Part shown: piece after piece, positions 14,436 through 21,145 of the stretch
Numbering within the stretch: the first letter of the stretch is position 1
How the letters are laid out: every line of letters starts with the position of its first letter
NCBI RefSeq assembly: GCF_000143415.4
Contig: NW_003314293.1
Span: 767,497 to 831,496, forward strand
Length of the DNA: 64,000 nt
Origin: Selaginella moellendorffii
Taxonomy: Eukaryota > Plantae > Lycopodiophyta
Direction of reading: 5' to 3'
Program-made: the position numbers and the translations under genes
Notes under the pieces: model-generated
Database searches by the model: none
Told to the model about the DNA's origin: nothing
What the model saw: the letters and a program-made list of their open reading frames with translations, nothing else

Positions 14436-14580
14436 GTTTCTTACCTGCTAGCGCGGAGAGGTCATTGAGTTGATGGTTTACTTCAAAGCTTGCCAGGCCC
14501 AAGAGCGTGAGATCAGCGAGCAGAGCTAGAACCAGCAAAGCCAGCAGAGGAGATGAGCTTCTTCCTCGCTTCATTGCCAT
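13946..14580 (-). CDS. AWPM-19-like plasma membrane protein (4 exons)
   Basis: Spliced product includes NAIFDLVRFSLTAAAVGVASAMIGLLHAR...LLLLATGFSAKHI...RLKTLEAFAIVAGGTQLFY, matching the AWPM-19 pattern (FALxAGVVGxAS, LLAxGxAxKEI, RLxTxEAF..TQL.Y). Confidence 0.8.
14388..14436. repeat. Compound (GT)n(GA)n microsatellite in the first intron of the AWPM-19-like gene
   Basis: Directly visible in the sequence. Confidence 0.95.
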
Positions 14581-14799
14581 ATTCCTACTTCTCTCTTTGA
14601 ATCGATCTTCTAGCCGCAAATTCTATATGATTTCCAACAAATTTATCACAAACACCACCTATTTCTTTCTTTTCTTTCACTCCCTCTTGCAAGCCCCCAA
14701 ACACTTCTTTTATACCGAAGCTCGACGATCAGAGTTTTGGAACTTACTGTCCTCGCCCCTCGTATACATCGTGTAGCTATGCATTTCTGCGTGTGAGAG

Positions 14800-15235
14800 G
14801 AACAGTGCGAGGAGAGGAAAGTGGTGGCTGACAGTGAGTTCCAGAAGATGGAGCTGGTTGACAAGAAGGCCGACGAAGATATCTTAATCAAACTGGTAAA
14901 GTCCTTCGATTGTTATGTTATGCGAGAAAGAGAGACTGACTGAGTTTCATACTCGACAGGGAGCGGACAAGGCCAAGAAGAAAGAAGGGGAGAAGGATGA
15001 TAAGACCAAGAAGGTAAGTGGATGGGCTTGTTTGTGGCTTTCTTTTAACGATGAGCGTGTTTTCGTTTCTTCAGTCGGTGCCGATCGAGTTCCGGAAATC
15101 CGAGGCCGAGAATCAGTATGGCGGACGTGGTGGCAATCGCGGCCGCGGCCGCGGGAGAGGCCTCAACAACAACACGCGGCTTCGGCTCCCGAGATTGCTG
15201 ATTTCCAGCAGTTCCCGTCTCTGGGAGGGAAATGA
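14800..15235 (+). pseudogene. RGG-repeat RNA-binding protein (HABP4/Stm1/RGGA family), 3' fragment with frameshift
   Basis: ERKVVADSEFQKM...ILIKL|GADKAKKKE...KK|SV, then GGRGGNRGRGRGR in one frame and the terminal APEIADFQQFPSLGGK in another. No 5' exons recognised. Confidence 0.65.
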
Positions 15236-15524
15236 GATCTCAGCACTCGATTTCTTCTTAACTCTCTCGTTTCCTCTCGTGCTCTTCTTTTTTGCTTGTG
15301 TGTGTGATCTGTTGGCTGGCACTTCTCTCGCTCTCCCCCTTTTTTCTTAACACTTGAGAAACTTGGAAAACATCTATGCATCTTTGTGATGCATGTCATG
15401 AAATGAAGCTTTTGTTTGACATCACACAGTTCCTTCGCTCATTTCTTTCGTTCTTGTTCTGGAGATTTACATTGACCTGATCTGGATTGTGATAATTTCA
15501 CTCTTATTTACTCCTGATTTTTGC

Positions 15525-16392
15525 TCAAGCTTTGGTGGCCAGCATTGCTGTTGCAACTCCAGCGATTCCAACGGTGAGAGCAATGCTTCCTCCATACTTG
15601 GCTCCAAACTCAGCAAAGTTGACGCAGGAATCCATGGCGGCATAGCCCTCTGCGTAGATTTCCTTGCTGACGATGTTGTAGATGGCGCGAAGTGGAGCGA
15701 GCACGGCCTGGTATGCGTATGGGAGGTACTCAGTTGCACCAATGGCATCAAAGAGGGAGTCCAGGAACCACTCGCTGTGAGAGGAAGCCTCCACGTTGTT
15801 AACCATGATGTTGCCGGAGAGAGTGAATGGGTTGTAGAGACCCAGCTTCTCCACCTTGGCAAGTTCTATAATTGTCAAAAGTAAGAGCAAAGTCTCAAAA
15901 GAAGTATGATGTTACCAGTGATTTGAGATGATCCCCAGAGAGTTTCTCCAACCTGGAGATCCTTGGCTCGCTTGTACACAAGCTTTCCCTTGGCGTCGAC
16001 TGGGATGAAGTGGCCCTCGCTAAGCTCGATCATGTCTGAGGCGGTGTGGACCTGGATGAACTCGGAGATCACATCGGCGTCCTTGTGGCCGAATGCGTAG
16101 ACATCCGAGAACACGTTTTTGCTCACTGCAACCTTTAGATCTGGCACTTTTATGGGCTTTCGAGAAACTTAAGAGCAATATAATACCTTGTCTCCAACTT
16201 TGAGATCTCTCATGAGTTTGAGGTCGCCGTTATACATTTGGACGGTGGCATCGCCTTTGCAAACATAAAGCCTGTGATTGGCTGTAAAATCGCTTGCAGA
16301 TTCTTACCTGGGAAACATGAGGTGTTGGTCGCTAGAACAACGCTAGCAAGAACAGCGAAGAGAGAAGTAGCAAAGAAAAAAGTGTGAGCCAT
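15525..16392 (-). CDS. Secreted Hedgehog-related Hint (Hog) domain protein, 236 aa; exons 16392-16308, 16254-16187, 16132-15916, 15865-15525
   Basis: Signal peptide, then TNTS-CFPGDATVQMYNGDLKLMRDLKVGDKV...FSDVYAFGHKD...FIQVHT..IELSEGHFI...RAKDLQVGE...GLYNPFTLSGNIMVNNVEAS. All Hedgehog-type Hint blocks are present. Three GT-AG introns (53, 54, 50 nt) keep the frame. Confidence 0.9.
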
Positions 16393-16779
16393 AGAGAACT
16401 CTACACTATGAAAGCCTAGAAAGATAGGAAAAGAAGCTCTAGAAGCGATGTTAAATCCTAGAGACGAGTGTTGGTGATCCTAAAACTTTGATAGCAAGAA
16501 TTATTTAATTCTAAGTACATATTTGAGATGCCGCATCATTGACAAGAAAGCTCTCCATAGCAATTTACTTAAATAATGACTACGAAAGAAATTAAATGTT
16601 CATTAAGAAAAATAAAACGAGTTATGGAGTTTCAAGGAATATTCTAAGAACCTTGCCCTAAAAGTGTCTAGGGTGGTGTGAGCGCAGCAGCTATCGAATA
16701 AAGCTAAACTCGCGGATAAAGCTATCAGTGGATCTGCCCAGCACACTCGCGGATAAACTCTTACTCCTGGTTGGGCGGC

Positions 16780-17575
16780 ATGTTCTGGCGGCGGCTTTTT
16801 GGAGGTGAGTGAGTAGAAGAGCGCAAGAGCCCAGCTAACATTTAGCTGCCCGCGGATGCAGCACGCTCGCGGAAACTATAGCTCGGGCTCGAGCTCGTGC
16901 TCCTGCTCCTCCTCTCAAGCTCGCCTTGTTCCTCTTCTGCGATATCTGCTACAACCGGCAGTTGACTGCATGCGACACGACGTTGCTTGATCACCCGAGC
17001 TATGCTCATGGAAACATCTGCCCCAAGCAGCGTCGTACACATGCAAATGCCCTTTACTGGGGGGCGCCTTGGAGCATTCCAGCCTACTTGTACGACAACG
17101 AAATGGAGCCTTCAATGACGCCGCTGGAGCCCTGCCACGTCAGGAGCATCGAAGCCGTGGGCTGCATTTCCACGTTCGAGCTCGGCCTGCTGTGTCGGGG
17201 TCCTCCGGCGGAATTCGTGATCGATGGAACTTTAGGAGAGCTTGATGCTAAAGAAGTCCTCGTCTATAAGGAATCCATCTGGCAGAATCGGGTCTCCACT
17301 GGCTACATCCTTCTAAGGCATTGCAGTATGGCTCTCTGGACTGGGTTGTCAACTACGACGACTTCCGGGGCATGCCCATGGCACTGTCGGCCAGGAAGTT
17401 CGTCCAGGCGTCTCATGACCGCGGAGAGGATCCTGTCAAGGAGCTGAACGCTGTGGACGCGATCGGGATCAGAAAGTGCGTCGTGGTGGATCTCCGCGGT
17501 ATTGGCATCAATAGAAAGATGGGCCTCTTTTTCGCCGAAGATGCTCTACGCGACGTGCTGCCGTGTGTGTTTTGA
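16780..17575 (+). CDS. Hypothetical protein with an Arg-rich, transit-peptide-like N-terminus
   Basis: MFWRRLFG|AARGCSTLAETIARARARAP... splices into the 16926 frame and probably continues in the 17321-17575 frame through a weak donor or a frameshift. No family recognised. Confidence 0.4.
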
Positions 17576-17732
17576 ATGTTTAGTGAATATGCCCTTCAAC
17601 GGTCAACACTAGCATTATCTCCTAGTCAACGCAAAATAAACGTGGGACATTTGCAAAATCTAGGCATGGCGCTTCTCTTCTCTTTCCCCACTGATTTCTC
17701 CAAAACCGGAAAAAGTAAGGAATTGGATCGAG

Positions 17733-19097
17733 ATGGCGACTGGCGGTGGCACTGATCGGCGAATCGTGCACGGTGTGCTCATGTTCACCCAGATCACATT
17801 CGGCATCAGTTACGTTCTCAACAAGGTTGCTCTCAACAATGGCGTCAACAAGATCGTCTTCTCGGTCTACCGGGATATCGTGGCCATCTTGTTCTTGGCG
17901 CCTCTTGCTTACTTCACCGAAAGGTATGAAATCTATAGCTTCAATGTCTTGCGATAGTTTCAACCCACTCAAACATCAGGAATGAGAGAACCCAGCTCAA
18001 TGCCAAACTTTTCAGCACCGTGTTTCTTCTGGGATTCATCGGGTAATTTATGAGTTCTCCAGCGGTGAAAGTTCACGTTTCATTCTTCTTCGTTTTTACC
18101 TTTCTATTTTCACAGGGTCTATGGTGCACAGCTTCTAGTGCTTACTGGACTCTCATTGACATCGTCTGGCTTTGTATCTATCATGCAAAGTGTAACTCCA
18201 GTGTGTGCTTTTCTCATTGCCATGGTTTTCAGGTACGTTACTTTTGTATGATCTTCTCAAAAAGCTTTCGATCTTGCCTACAGGCTGGAACACATTCGAT
18301 TCAAAAGGATAGACGGCCAGGCTAAACTCTTGGGAGTGATACTGTCGATCGCAGGAACTTTCATAGCCTCGGTCTTTAAAGGCCACGCAGTTGTTGGAGC
18401 AAGCAATGGTTTCACTTTAGATCTCTCGCCTTGGAACCTCGGTGCACTTGTCCTTGCTGCAAACAGCTTGTGCATTGGAGCTTACATAAATCTACAGGTT
18501 TCGTAGTTCTTCCAAAGTTTGCGATCACTGGTATCGATTGTTTTCTTCTTTTCGATAGGCGCCAATTCTCAAGCACTATCCAGCACCATTTTCATTGACA
18601 GCACTCTCGTACGTTTGTGGAATGGTCTGCCTAGCGGCCACAGGAGCGTTTACAGTAAATCTGTCGGTTTGGAGGATCACCAAGCTTGTAGATGTGATTG
18701 CTTTCACTTATGCGGTACGTAAGATCAGCTTTCTTCATTGTTTGCCAGTTCGTGAATTTATCATCTCTTCTTTCTTGTTCAGGGAATCGTTTCTTCGGGC
18801 TTAAACTTCGCATTGCAGACGTGGTGCGTCCACAAAGTCGGGCCTTTCTTAGTTATCGCGTATTTTCCCCTCCAGGCCATTGTTGCAAGCTTCCTAGCAT
18901 TCATATTCTTGAAAGACTCCCTCTTCCTTGGAAGGTAAAAGAGACCACTTTGGAGGTTCTTCTTACTTTTGCTTCTTTTCCCCAGCATTGTTGGCGGACT
19001 ATTTATCGTATCAGGACTCTATTTTGTGACATGGGGACAAGTCAAGCAAAAAAAGCTAGACGCTCAAGAAGAACCCACAGAACCTTTGATCGCCTAG
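17733..19097 (+). CDS. WAT1-related / MtN21 (UMAMIT, EamA-like) transporter
   Basis: VLNKVALNNGVNKIVFSVYRDIVAILFLAPLAYFTER, GQAKLLGVILSIAG, LQTWCVHKVGPFLVIAYFPLQ, LFLGSIVGG. Multi-exon, GT-AG introns. Confidence 0.92.
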
Positions 19098-21073: not shown

Positions 21074-21145
21074 ATCATAGTGGTGCAGCAGAAGCGTGGT
21101 GGGCCCATAACCCATAGGTCGGAGGATCGAAACCTCTCTCTGATA
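21074..21145 (+). tRNA. Initiator tRNA-Met (CAT), probably degenerate
   Basis: ATCATAGTGGTGCAGCAGAAGCGTGGTGGGCCCATAACCCATAGGTCGGAGGATCGAAACCTCTCTCTGATA matches plant tRNA-iMet (A1:U72, ATCGAAA T-loop) but has an acceptor-stem mismatch and transition changes. Confidence 0.75.

Follow-up and report, generated by a model that had tools for sequence, protein, structure and literature searches.

A Hog gene of Selaginella moellendorffii with a four-residue stub in place of a passenger: gene structure, relatives, and a proposed mechanism

The autoprocessing of Hedgehog proteins is understood almost solely from animals, in which the Hog part is regarded as a disposable tool that lipidates a signaling domain. 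A locus of the lycophyte Selaginella moellendorffii raises the question of what a Hog protein does when it has next to nothing to process. The locus occupies positions 15525..16392, on the minus strand, of a 64,000-nucleotide (nt) stretch of contig NW_003314293.1 (positions 767,497 to 831,496 of the forward strand), which we call the window, and it encodes a protein of 236 residues in which a predicted signal peptide is followed by the four residues TNTS, a Hog region, and a hydrophobic tail. The answer that we consider probable is that its product is a Hog protein of a plant family, held in the membrane by a type I anchor, the passenger of which has been cut down to a stub of Asn/Thr/Ser residues, and that this protein works by the mechanism set out below. 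The family itself is already known and annotated; new within it are the architecture of signal peptide, four-residue stub, Hog, and predicted membrane anchor, and a tandemly amplified subfamily of stub forms, which combines a near-empty passenger, purifying selection, a most likely ancestry among 4-Cys peptides, and the putative anchor.

The gene model was rebuilt by hand and by script and is confirmed by RNA splice joints. Its four exons (16392-16308, 16254-16187, 16132-15916, and 15865-15525, with the stop codon inside the last) make up a coding sequence of 711 nt and are separated by three GT..AG introns: intron 1 (16255..16307, 53 nt, phase 1), which lies right behind CFP-G, intron 2 (16133..16186, 54 nt, phase 0), and intron 3 (15866..15915, 50 nt, phase 1). 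The RNA evidence comes from four RNA-type runs, each of a separate study, the contigs of which were compared with positions 14500-18500 of the window; as these contigs are assembled, they bear on the presence and splicing of a transcript and not on its expression level. All three introns are seen as contig joints, which read CT..AC on the plus strand and GT..AG for the gene; the joint of intron 1 (16253/16307, cut +1) is present in runs X5 and X14, and those of introns 2 and 3 in all four runs. Contigs of run X5 differ from the window copy at 0-2 positions per 91-215 nt, including the part of exon 4 in which paralogs diverge at many sites, and because the agreement is near-perfect even there, the window copy itself must be expressed. 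The intact four-exon gene that a preliminary description of this DNA had proposed is thus borne out, and so is its N-terminal end, since no extra exon precedes it in the RNA: one contig extends in the 5' direction to 16406, and in the four runs there is no contig coverage at 16407-17690 and no upstream joint. An in-frame TAG lies at 16482-16480, and no ATG follows it before 16392, a combination that fixes the start codon at 16392 and, together with the lack of any contig upstream of 16406, rules out an extra 5' exon or an upstream start. A search for a second Hog copy within the 64-kb window found none.

The assignment to the Hint domain was made at two levels. The pieces encoded by exons 2, 3, and 4 match the Pfam Hint profile PF01079 collinearly, at profile positions 17-38, 47-91, and 134-163 and with 15, 17.2, and 27.3 bits, respectively, while the paralog P0151, which is 94.5% identical to the window protein, reaches 83.1 bits against a cut-off of 29.7. 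It is on P0151, rather than on the window protein, that the full-length Pfam score, the PDB search, the structure model, and the Hedgehog alignment were made. An AlphaFold model of P0151 was computed from an alignment of 48 family proteins. Its mean predicted local distance difference test (pLDDT) score is 87.6, with 95-98 in the Hint core, and its predicted TM score (pTM) is 0.81; behind the Hint core it shows four to five helices, and near the C-terminus a helix spanning residues 209-237. The best PDB match of the model is 6tyy, the D46H form of Hedgehog (E 4e-12), followed by the wild-type 1at0, both with a TM score of 0.80 by target, and by sequence, too, the best PDB match of P0151 is the engineered 6tyy. 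Judged from this model, the gene product has a Hedgehog-type Hint fold, which agrees, as do the collinear profile matches, with the earlier description of a Hedgehog-type Hog protein in a land plant.

The catalytic residues can be followed one by one along the minus strand. Cys26 (16315..16317, motif CFPGDATV) aligns to Cys1 of the Drosophila chains 6tyy and 1at0, and the scissile bond in front of it, by alignment to Drosophila and human Hedgehog chains, is Ser25-Cys26, in place of the Gly-Cys of Hedgehog, which is present in the paralogs P0153 and P0003. His67 (16085..16087, motif FGHKD) stands at the position of the Hedgehog general base Asp46 and aligns to His46 of 6tyy. Block B, which reads TxxH in Hedgehog and most paralogs, is S89-E-G-H92 (16010..16021), aligned to T-P-A-H of Drosophila Hedgehog and to T-A-G-H of the paralogs, and Ser152 (15780..15782), inside the motif A-S-x-H-S-(E/D)-W, takes the position of Hedgehog Cys143. 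The segment A-S-S-H-S-E-W with the ...VLAPLRA behind it aligns to ASCYAV...LAPART of human SHH, that is, to motif J and to motif K of the sterol-recognition region (SRR), and the SRR-like helical region that extends over residues 155-216 (15588..15773, EWFLD...YLPYAYQAVLAPLRAIY...KYGG) aligns to the SRR of human SHH and coincides with four helices of the P0151 model. An intein was considered and rejected, because the Hint part ends in ...A-S-S-H-S-E-W without an Asn and runs into SRR helices, no extein is present, and inteins rank under Hedgehog in the fold search.

The Ser-Cys bond, the SxxH motif, the His for Asp46, and the Ser for Cys143 had all been singled out in the preliminary description as departures from Hedgehog. 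The alignment confirms every one of them in the window gene, and it corrects their scope. At least 90% of the 48 aligned proteins share Cys1, the His at position 46, the block B His, and A-S-x-H-S-(E/D)-W, while a census of the Cys143 position across the fetched family gives Ser in 40, Ala in 36, Val in 26, Cys in 11, and Thr in 10 proteins. As the His is conserved and position 143 variable family-wide, His46 and the absence of Cys143 are traits of the whole plant and algal family and not of this gene.

At the N-terminus, hydropathy predicts a signal peptide of 21 residues (MAHTFFFATSLFAVLASVVLA, 16330..16392), for which the best cut under the -3/-1 rule falls behind Ala21, between VLA and TN, at the same (V/F/T)-x-A site that the cargo-bearing paralogs have in common; a cut right before Cys26 is disfavored, because it would place an Asn at -3. 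The "cargo" left between this predicted cut and Cys26 is the stub TNTS (residues 22-25, 16318..16329) with the sequon Asn23-Thr-Ser, and the claim that a mere four or so residues with an N-x-S sequon precede the catalytic Cys therefore holds. At the opposite end, residues 217-233 (15537..15587) form a predicted transmembrane helix with a mean Kyte-Doolittle hydropathy of about 1.5, supported by the P0151 model and by the tails of relatives; it follows YGG-S without a polar spacer and is succeeded by the three-residue tail TKA. In relatives the hydrophobic tails close with stubs rich in Lys/Arg, for instance SKRKH, SRKS, and LKRRK, and because their hydrophobic stretches thus run into Lys/Arg, we read the tail as a type I stop-transfer anchor with a short cytosolic stub, and the whole as a type I membrane-anchored protein. 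The membrane-anchored product suggested earlier fits this family-wide pattern. A glycosylphosphatidylinositol anchor, which calls for a small omega site, a polar spacer, and a hydrophobic C-terminus free of a basic cytosolic stub, appears less likely than a transmembrane helix, the tails of relatives finishing in basic residues.

The closest proteins in the databases are all from S. moellendorffii, where they go by the RefSeq/GenBank names "warthog protein 6 isoform X2", "warthog protein 4", and "Hint domain-containing protein", and the paralogous genes lie on scaffolds of 0.46-2.5 Mb of assembly GCA_000143415.2. The next relatives belong to the liverwort Riccia fluitans, the moss Ceratodon purpureus, and the clubmoss Diphasiastrum complanatum, and in a library of 1.84 billion proteins the exon 4 piece finds 432 relatives at E ≤0.001, most of which align through the helical region too. 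"Warthog" is a best-hit label taken from nematodes, and the proteins so named have no Wart domain. Animal contamination or a recent transfer from nematodes, which the label might suggest, is excluded by the Selaginella-type 50-nt introns, by the placement on S. moellendorffii scaffolds, and by the phylogeny proposed as a check in the preliminary description, in which the window gene groups with Hogs of liverwort, moss, and clubmoss. That Hog genes had been reported outside animals is likewise correct, plant Hogs having been published in 2008 (PMC2362128).

Within this family the stub forms stand apart, for among some 68 family proteins with a recognizable catalytic Cys only the Selaginella stub copies have fewer than 46 residues before it. 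There are at least nine stub-type copies, namely the window copy and eight others in tandem arrays on two scaffolds of the public assembly. Five are intact, with the stubs TNTS (the window copy), TNTNNS (two copies), TNTNTS, and TNTTG, and in all five the catalytic residues, i.e., Cys1, His46, and the block B His, are preserved. The stubs comprise 4-6 residues of the Asn/Thr/Ser type and differ from one another by whole AAC/ACC codons. The remaining four copies are decayed: one lacks exon 1 and a donor site and carries an in-frame TAG; another has deletions of 10 nt and 4 nt in exon 4; a third has an exon 1 deletion that takes out the Cys codon; and the fourth (L006:4001-4639, GL377687.1, annotated as SELMODRAFT_429995) passes from the signal peptide directly to CFPG, with zero stub, and has an exon 4 without A-S-x-H-S-E-W, SRR, and anchor. 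We do not accept this last copy as proof that cleavage is dispensable, since the sole zero-stub copy is a decayed one that has lost its SRR and anchor.

So high a share of damaged copies raises the suspicion of a crippled family on its way to loss, in which, once the passenger had been deleted, the surviving copies would be mere transcribed remains with no role of their own; the lesions in its favor are the missing exon 1, the in-frame TAG, the deletions of 10 nt and 4 nt, and the lost Cys codon and SRR. The record of selection makes this very improbable. Between the window copy and the TNTTG copy the ratio of nonsynonymous to synonymous divergence (dN/dS) is 0.21 at a dS of 0.70 (Nei-Gojobori) and 0.13 in the Hint part, closer copies give about 0.2, and for the two stub lineages as a whole dN/dS is about 0.2 over a dS of 0.7-1.0, with 0.12-0.13 in the Hint part. 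Such low values indicate that the Hog part has been under purifying selection across the split of the two stub lineages, and they are joined by the five copies that remain intact and by a window copy that is transcribed and properly spliced in several studies.

How such a protein might act can be proposed from the arrangement of its parts, and it is for cleavage, nucleophile, glycosylation, and topology that we infer rather than observe. The signal peptidase of the endoplasmic reticulum would first cut behind Ala21. The folded Hint domain would then shift the Ser25-Cys26 bond to a thioester, using Cys26 and S-x-x-His92, and His67 would activate the nucleophile that resolves this thioester, for which a membrane sterol brought in by the SRR helices beside the anchor is the most plausible candidate and water the alternative. 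TNTS would thereby be released, possibly N-glycosylated at Asn23 and possibly esterified to the sterol, whereas the Hog module with its N-terminal Cys would stay anchored in the membrane. Sonic hedgehog with the D46H exchange still autoprocesses in cells (PMC12054796), and by analogy with this active engineered form animal-like chemistry may persist despite His67. Because constraint is seen in the Hog part and not in the short, variable stub, we think it fairly likely that selection acts on a function of the Hog module as such, or on the event of cleavage or sterol consumption, and not on a peptide signal.

Several points weigh against this reading. In Sonic hedgehog the exchanges C143A and C143D abolish processing, and Cys143 has been proposed to carry a branched thioester (PMC12054796); the equivalent residue is Ser here and Ala or Val in paralogs, so that the animal route through the branched Cys143 thioester cannot apply as such. 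The residue at -1 is Ser and not Gly, the decay of four of the nine stub copies speaks for weak constraint on individual copies, and both the structure and the full-length Pfam score come from the paralog P0151, not from the window protein. A literature search found no experiment showing autoprocessing, nor other functional work, for any plant Hog. Some of these points would be equally natural for a Hint protein that never breaks its Ser25-Cys26 bond and serves to bind sterols or lipids at the membrane in which it is anchored, or acts on the cargo-bearing paralogs as their partner or decoy. A residue essential in animal Hedgehog (PMC12054796) is after all not conserved in the plant and algal family, a string of 4-6 variable residues is hard to picture as a selected product, and hog-1 of Caenorhabditis elegans offers the precedent of a conserved Hog-only gene without a passenger (PMC1636047). 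We nevertheless regard a non-cleaving protein as unlikely: that Cys1, His46, and the block B His have stayed invariant in stub copies, where purifying selection is strong, would be unexpected if their chemistry were irrelevant, and the only copy without a stub, like the one without the Cys, is decayed.

If the bond is indeed cleaved, as we favor, the released stub might itself be the product, an N-glycosylated TNTS esterified to a plant sterol and thus a small glycopeptide-lipid of the membrane or wall, much as the preliminary description had suggested next to a Hint domain that acts on another nucleophile. Every intact stub contains an N-x-S/T sequon, and among the variants TNTS, TNTNNS, TNTNTS, TNNNNS, and TNTTG none has fewer than one; the SRR-like region aligns with the SHH sterol-recognition region, and His at position 46 supports sterol transfer in Hedgehog (PMC12054796; PDB 6tyy). 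The sequons are weak evidence, however, because with only Asn, Thr, and Ser in play such strings yield them by chance, and the length of the stub varies through simple AAC/ACC repeats, in a manner that resembles slippage rather than constraint. The variant TNNNNS is encoded, instead of TNTS, by a contig of run X16 (window 16256-16323), which is either a close allele or a copy outside the loci fetched, and it shows that stub length is polymorphic via these codon repeats. An Asn two residues from the signal-peptidase site may, moreover, be a poor substrate for glycosylation, and sterol adducts are known in no plant. We accordingly hold a function of the released peptide to be improbable and continue to place it in the Hog module or its cleavage.

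Where the stub came from was addressed with a maximum-likelihood tree of the Hog parts only. All these Selaginella Hog proteins fall into one clade (99/99), in which forms with a 4-Cys peptide are sister (87/81) to a clade made up of the stub forms and of Pro-rich forms that resemble arabinogalactan proteins or extensins. The Pro-rich forms join the TNTTG stub copy (90/83), i.e., they are nested among the stub forms, and a topology that unites all stub forms in one clade is not rejected (approximately unbiased test, p 0.21), so that either the Pro-rich passenger may have grown from a stub or the stub may have arisen twice. The differences between passengers are all found within exon 1, before the common intron position, and the first two mature residues, Thr-Asn, are common to the stubs and a 4-Cys form; because the differences are confined to exon 1 and Thr-Asn is shared, an internal deletion in exon 1 would account for the loss of the passenger. 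By sequence comparison the stub is thus most likely the remnant of the small 4-Cys peptide of older paralogs.

Two of the passenger types invite separate remarks. In the genes of the "warthog protein 4" type (L005:3001-4018, L002:10001-10882) the Pro-rich passenger, a TPPP/APPP repeat, sits in exon 1, flanked by a signal-peptide sequence nearly identical to that of the TNTTG copy and by the same GGA-TGC-TTC-CCA-G exon end, and as the repeat block of about 150 nt is the sole difference from the TNTTG copy, this points to gain or loss of the whole passenger by one indel. In the 4-Cys form P0157 (L004:3001-3969) the signal peptide and passenger give a sub-threshold match to the Pfam late nodulin family (18.9 bits against a cut-off of 30.4), which is probably a mere likeness among small Cys-rich secreted peptides.

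Against what is known, the window gene is closest to other annotated genes of its own species. Its protein is 92-94.5% identical over its full length to RefSeq "warthog protein 6 isoform X2" and SELMODRAFT_429979 (P0151, P0152) and 74% identical, again over the full length, to SELMODRAFT_448268 (P0153), all of which have the same four exons and the same type of stub (TNTNNS, TNTTG); the window copy is a locus separate from these, about 92% identical in DNA, and it has the shortest intact stub. Plant Hogs were described by Bürglin in 2008 (PMC2362128) from S. moellendorffii, Selaginella lepidophylla, and Physcomitrella patens, as proteins with a conserved upstream region in which the Cys of motif J is replaced by Ser, Thr, or Asp. 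The window gene shares with them family and species, the order of signal peptide and Hog with motifs J and K, and the replaced motif J Cys. It differs in that theirs is a conserved passenger region and its own is TNTS only, and in that a C-terminal membrane anchor and a stub subfamily are not among the features given for plant Hogs in the passages of that paper considered here.

The features of the Hog family that were looked for are all present, namely the PF01079 match, the Hint fold (in the paralog model), the motif A Cys in C-F-x, the block B T/S-x-x-H, and motifs J and K. With the C-terminal autoprocessing domain of animal Hedgehog (HhC; 1at0, 6tyy) the protein has in common the predicted Hint fold (TM 0.80), Cys1-Phe, the block B His, the A-S-x at the end of Hint, and helices that align to the SRR. 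Unlike animal HhC it has Ser-Cys, His for Asp46 as in the active engineered D46H form, no conserved Cys143, a predicted membrane anchor, and no signaling passenger; the Gly-Cys bond, Asp46, Cys143, and folded Hedge-type passenger that mark the cholesterol-transferring HhC of animals are absent, TNTS being all that lies upstream. The gene should consequently not be filed as an animal-type HhC, a verdict that lowers the case for its being an HhC and not the case for its working like one.

Hogs with little or no passenger are also known from nematodes. C. elegans HOG-1 (W06B11.4) is described as a Hog without a recognizable N-terminal domain that, being conserved between species, is thought to be no pseudogene (PMC1636047; PMC2362128). 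It resembles the window protein in being a Hog without a real passenger, but it has no signal peptide, whereas the window protein has a predicted signal peptide, the four-residue stub, and a predicted C-terminal membrane helix, and the two losses of a passenger are independent. Among the short-passenger Hogs that Bürglin's account lists, Shog1 and Shog2 of Xiphinema have 15 and 25 residues and Xhog3 of Trichinella has 34 (PMC2362128); as given there, these share with the window protein the succession of signal peptide, very short predicted N-terminal peptide, and Hog, although the four-residue stub is shorter still and belongs to a different kingdom and Hog lineage.

Whether Hog has a function of its own becomes accessible to experiment, for here is a plant subfamily that, nearly without a passenger, is expressed and keeps its Hint core, SRR-like helices, and putative anchor under purifying selection. 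The maintenance of so empty a form suggests that the Hog domain does more than tag a passenger. The plant Hog family is in addition a natural experiment on two debated residues, having His at position 46 throughout and no conserved Cys at 143; if plant Hogs cleave, the branched Cys143 intermediate is not universal, and if they transfer phytosterol, this would be the first sterylation of a protein or peptide outside animals. A bolder proposal, which we advance as a speculation with the odds against it, is that the Hog module has a passenger-independent function, either as a single-use membrane switch that consumes or senses sterol or as a maker of a glycosylated tetrapeptide-sterol, achieved with a natural His46 and without Cys143, and that the stub may seed new passengers, such as the Pro-rich one, by repeat expansion.

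The surroundings of the gene yielded further observations. Convergent to it, on the plus strand at 14807-15551, lies a gene with introns at 14895-14958 and 15012-15072 that encodes an RGG-repeat protein ending in ...EIADFQQFPSLGGK. Compared with the window, all four RNA runs carry 10 additional nt (TAGCTCGAGC) behind 15181; with them the RGG frame reaches the conserved C-terminus, whereas the window copy, which lacks them, has its last codons out of frame, the result of an indel in the assembly or else the sign of a broken allele. A further insertion of 1 nt behind 15248 is found in three of the four runs. Single RNA contigs, such as record 6 of run X16 (1417 nt), span both the RGG gene (plus) and the Hog gene (minus) across window 15236-15524, so that the two convergent transcripts must meet or overlap at their 3' ends. 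On the upstream side of the Hog gene, a spliced and transcribed gene occupies 17691-18498 on the plus strand, with introns at 17922-17977, 18042-18114, and 18230-18280, and further on, at 21074-21145 (plus strand), Rfam identifies a tRNA (41.5 bits) that ARAGORN missed.

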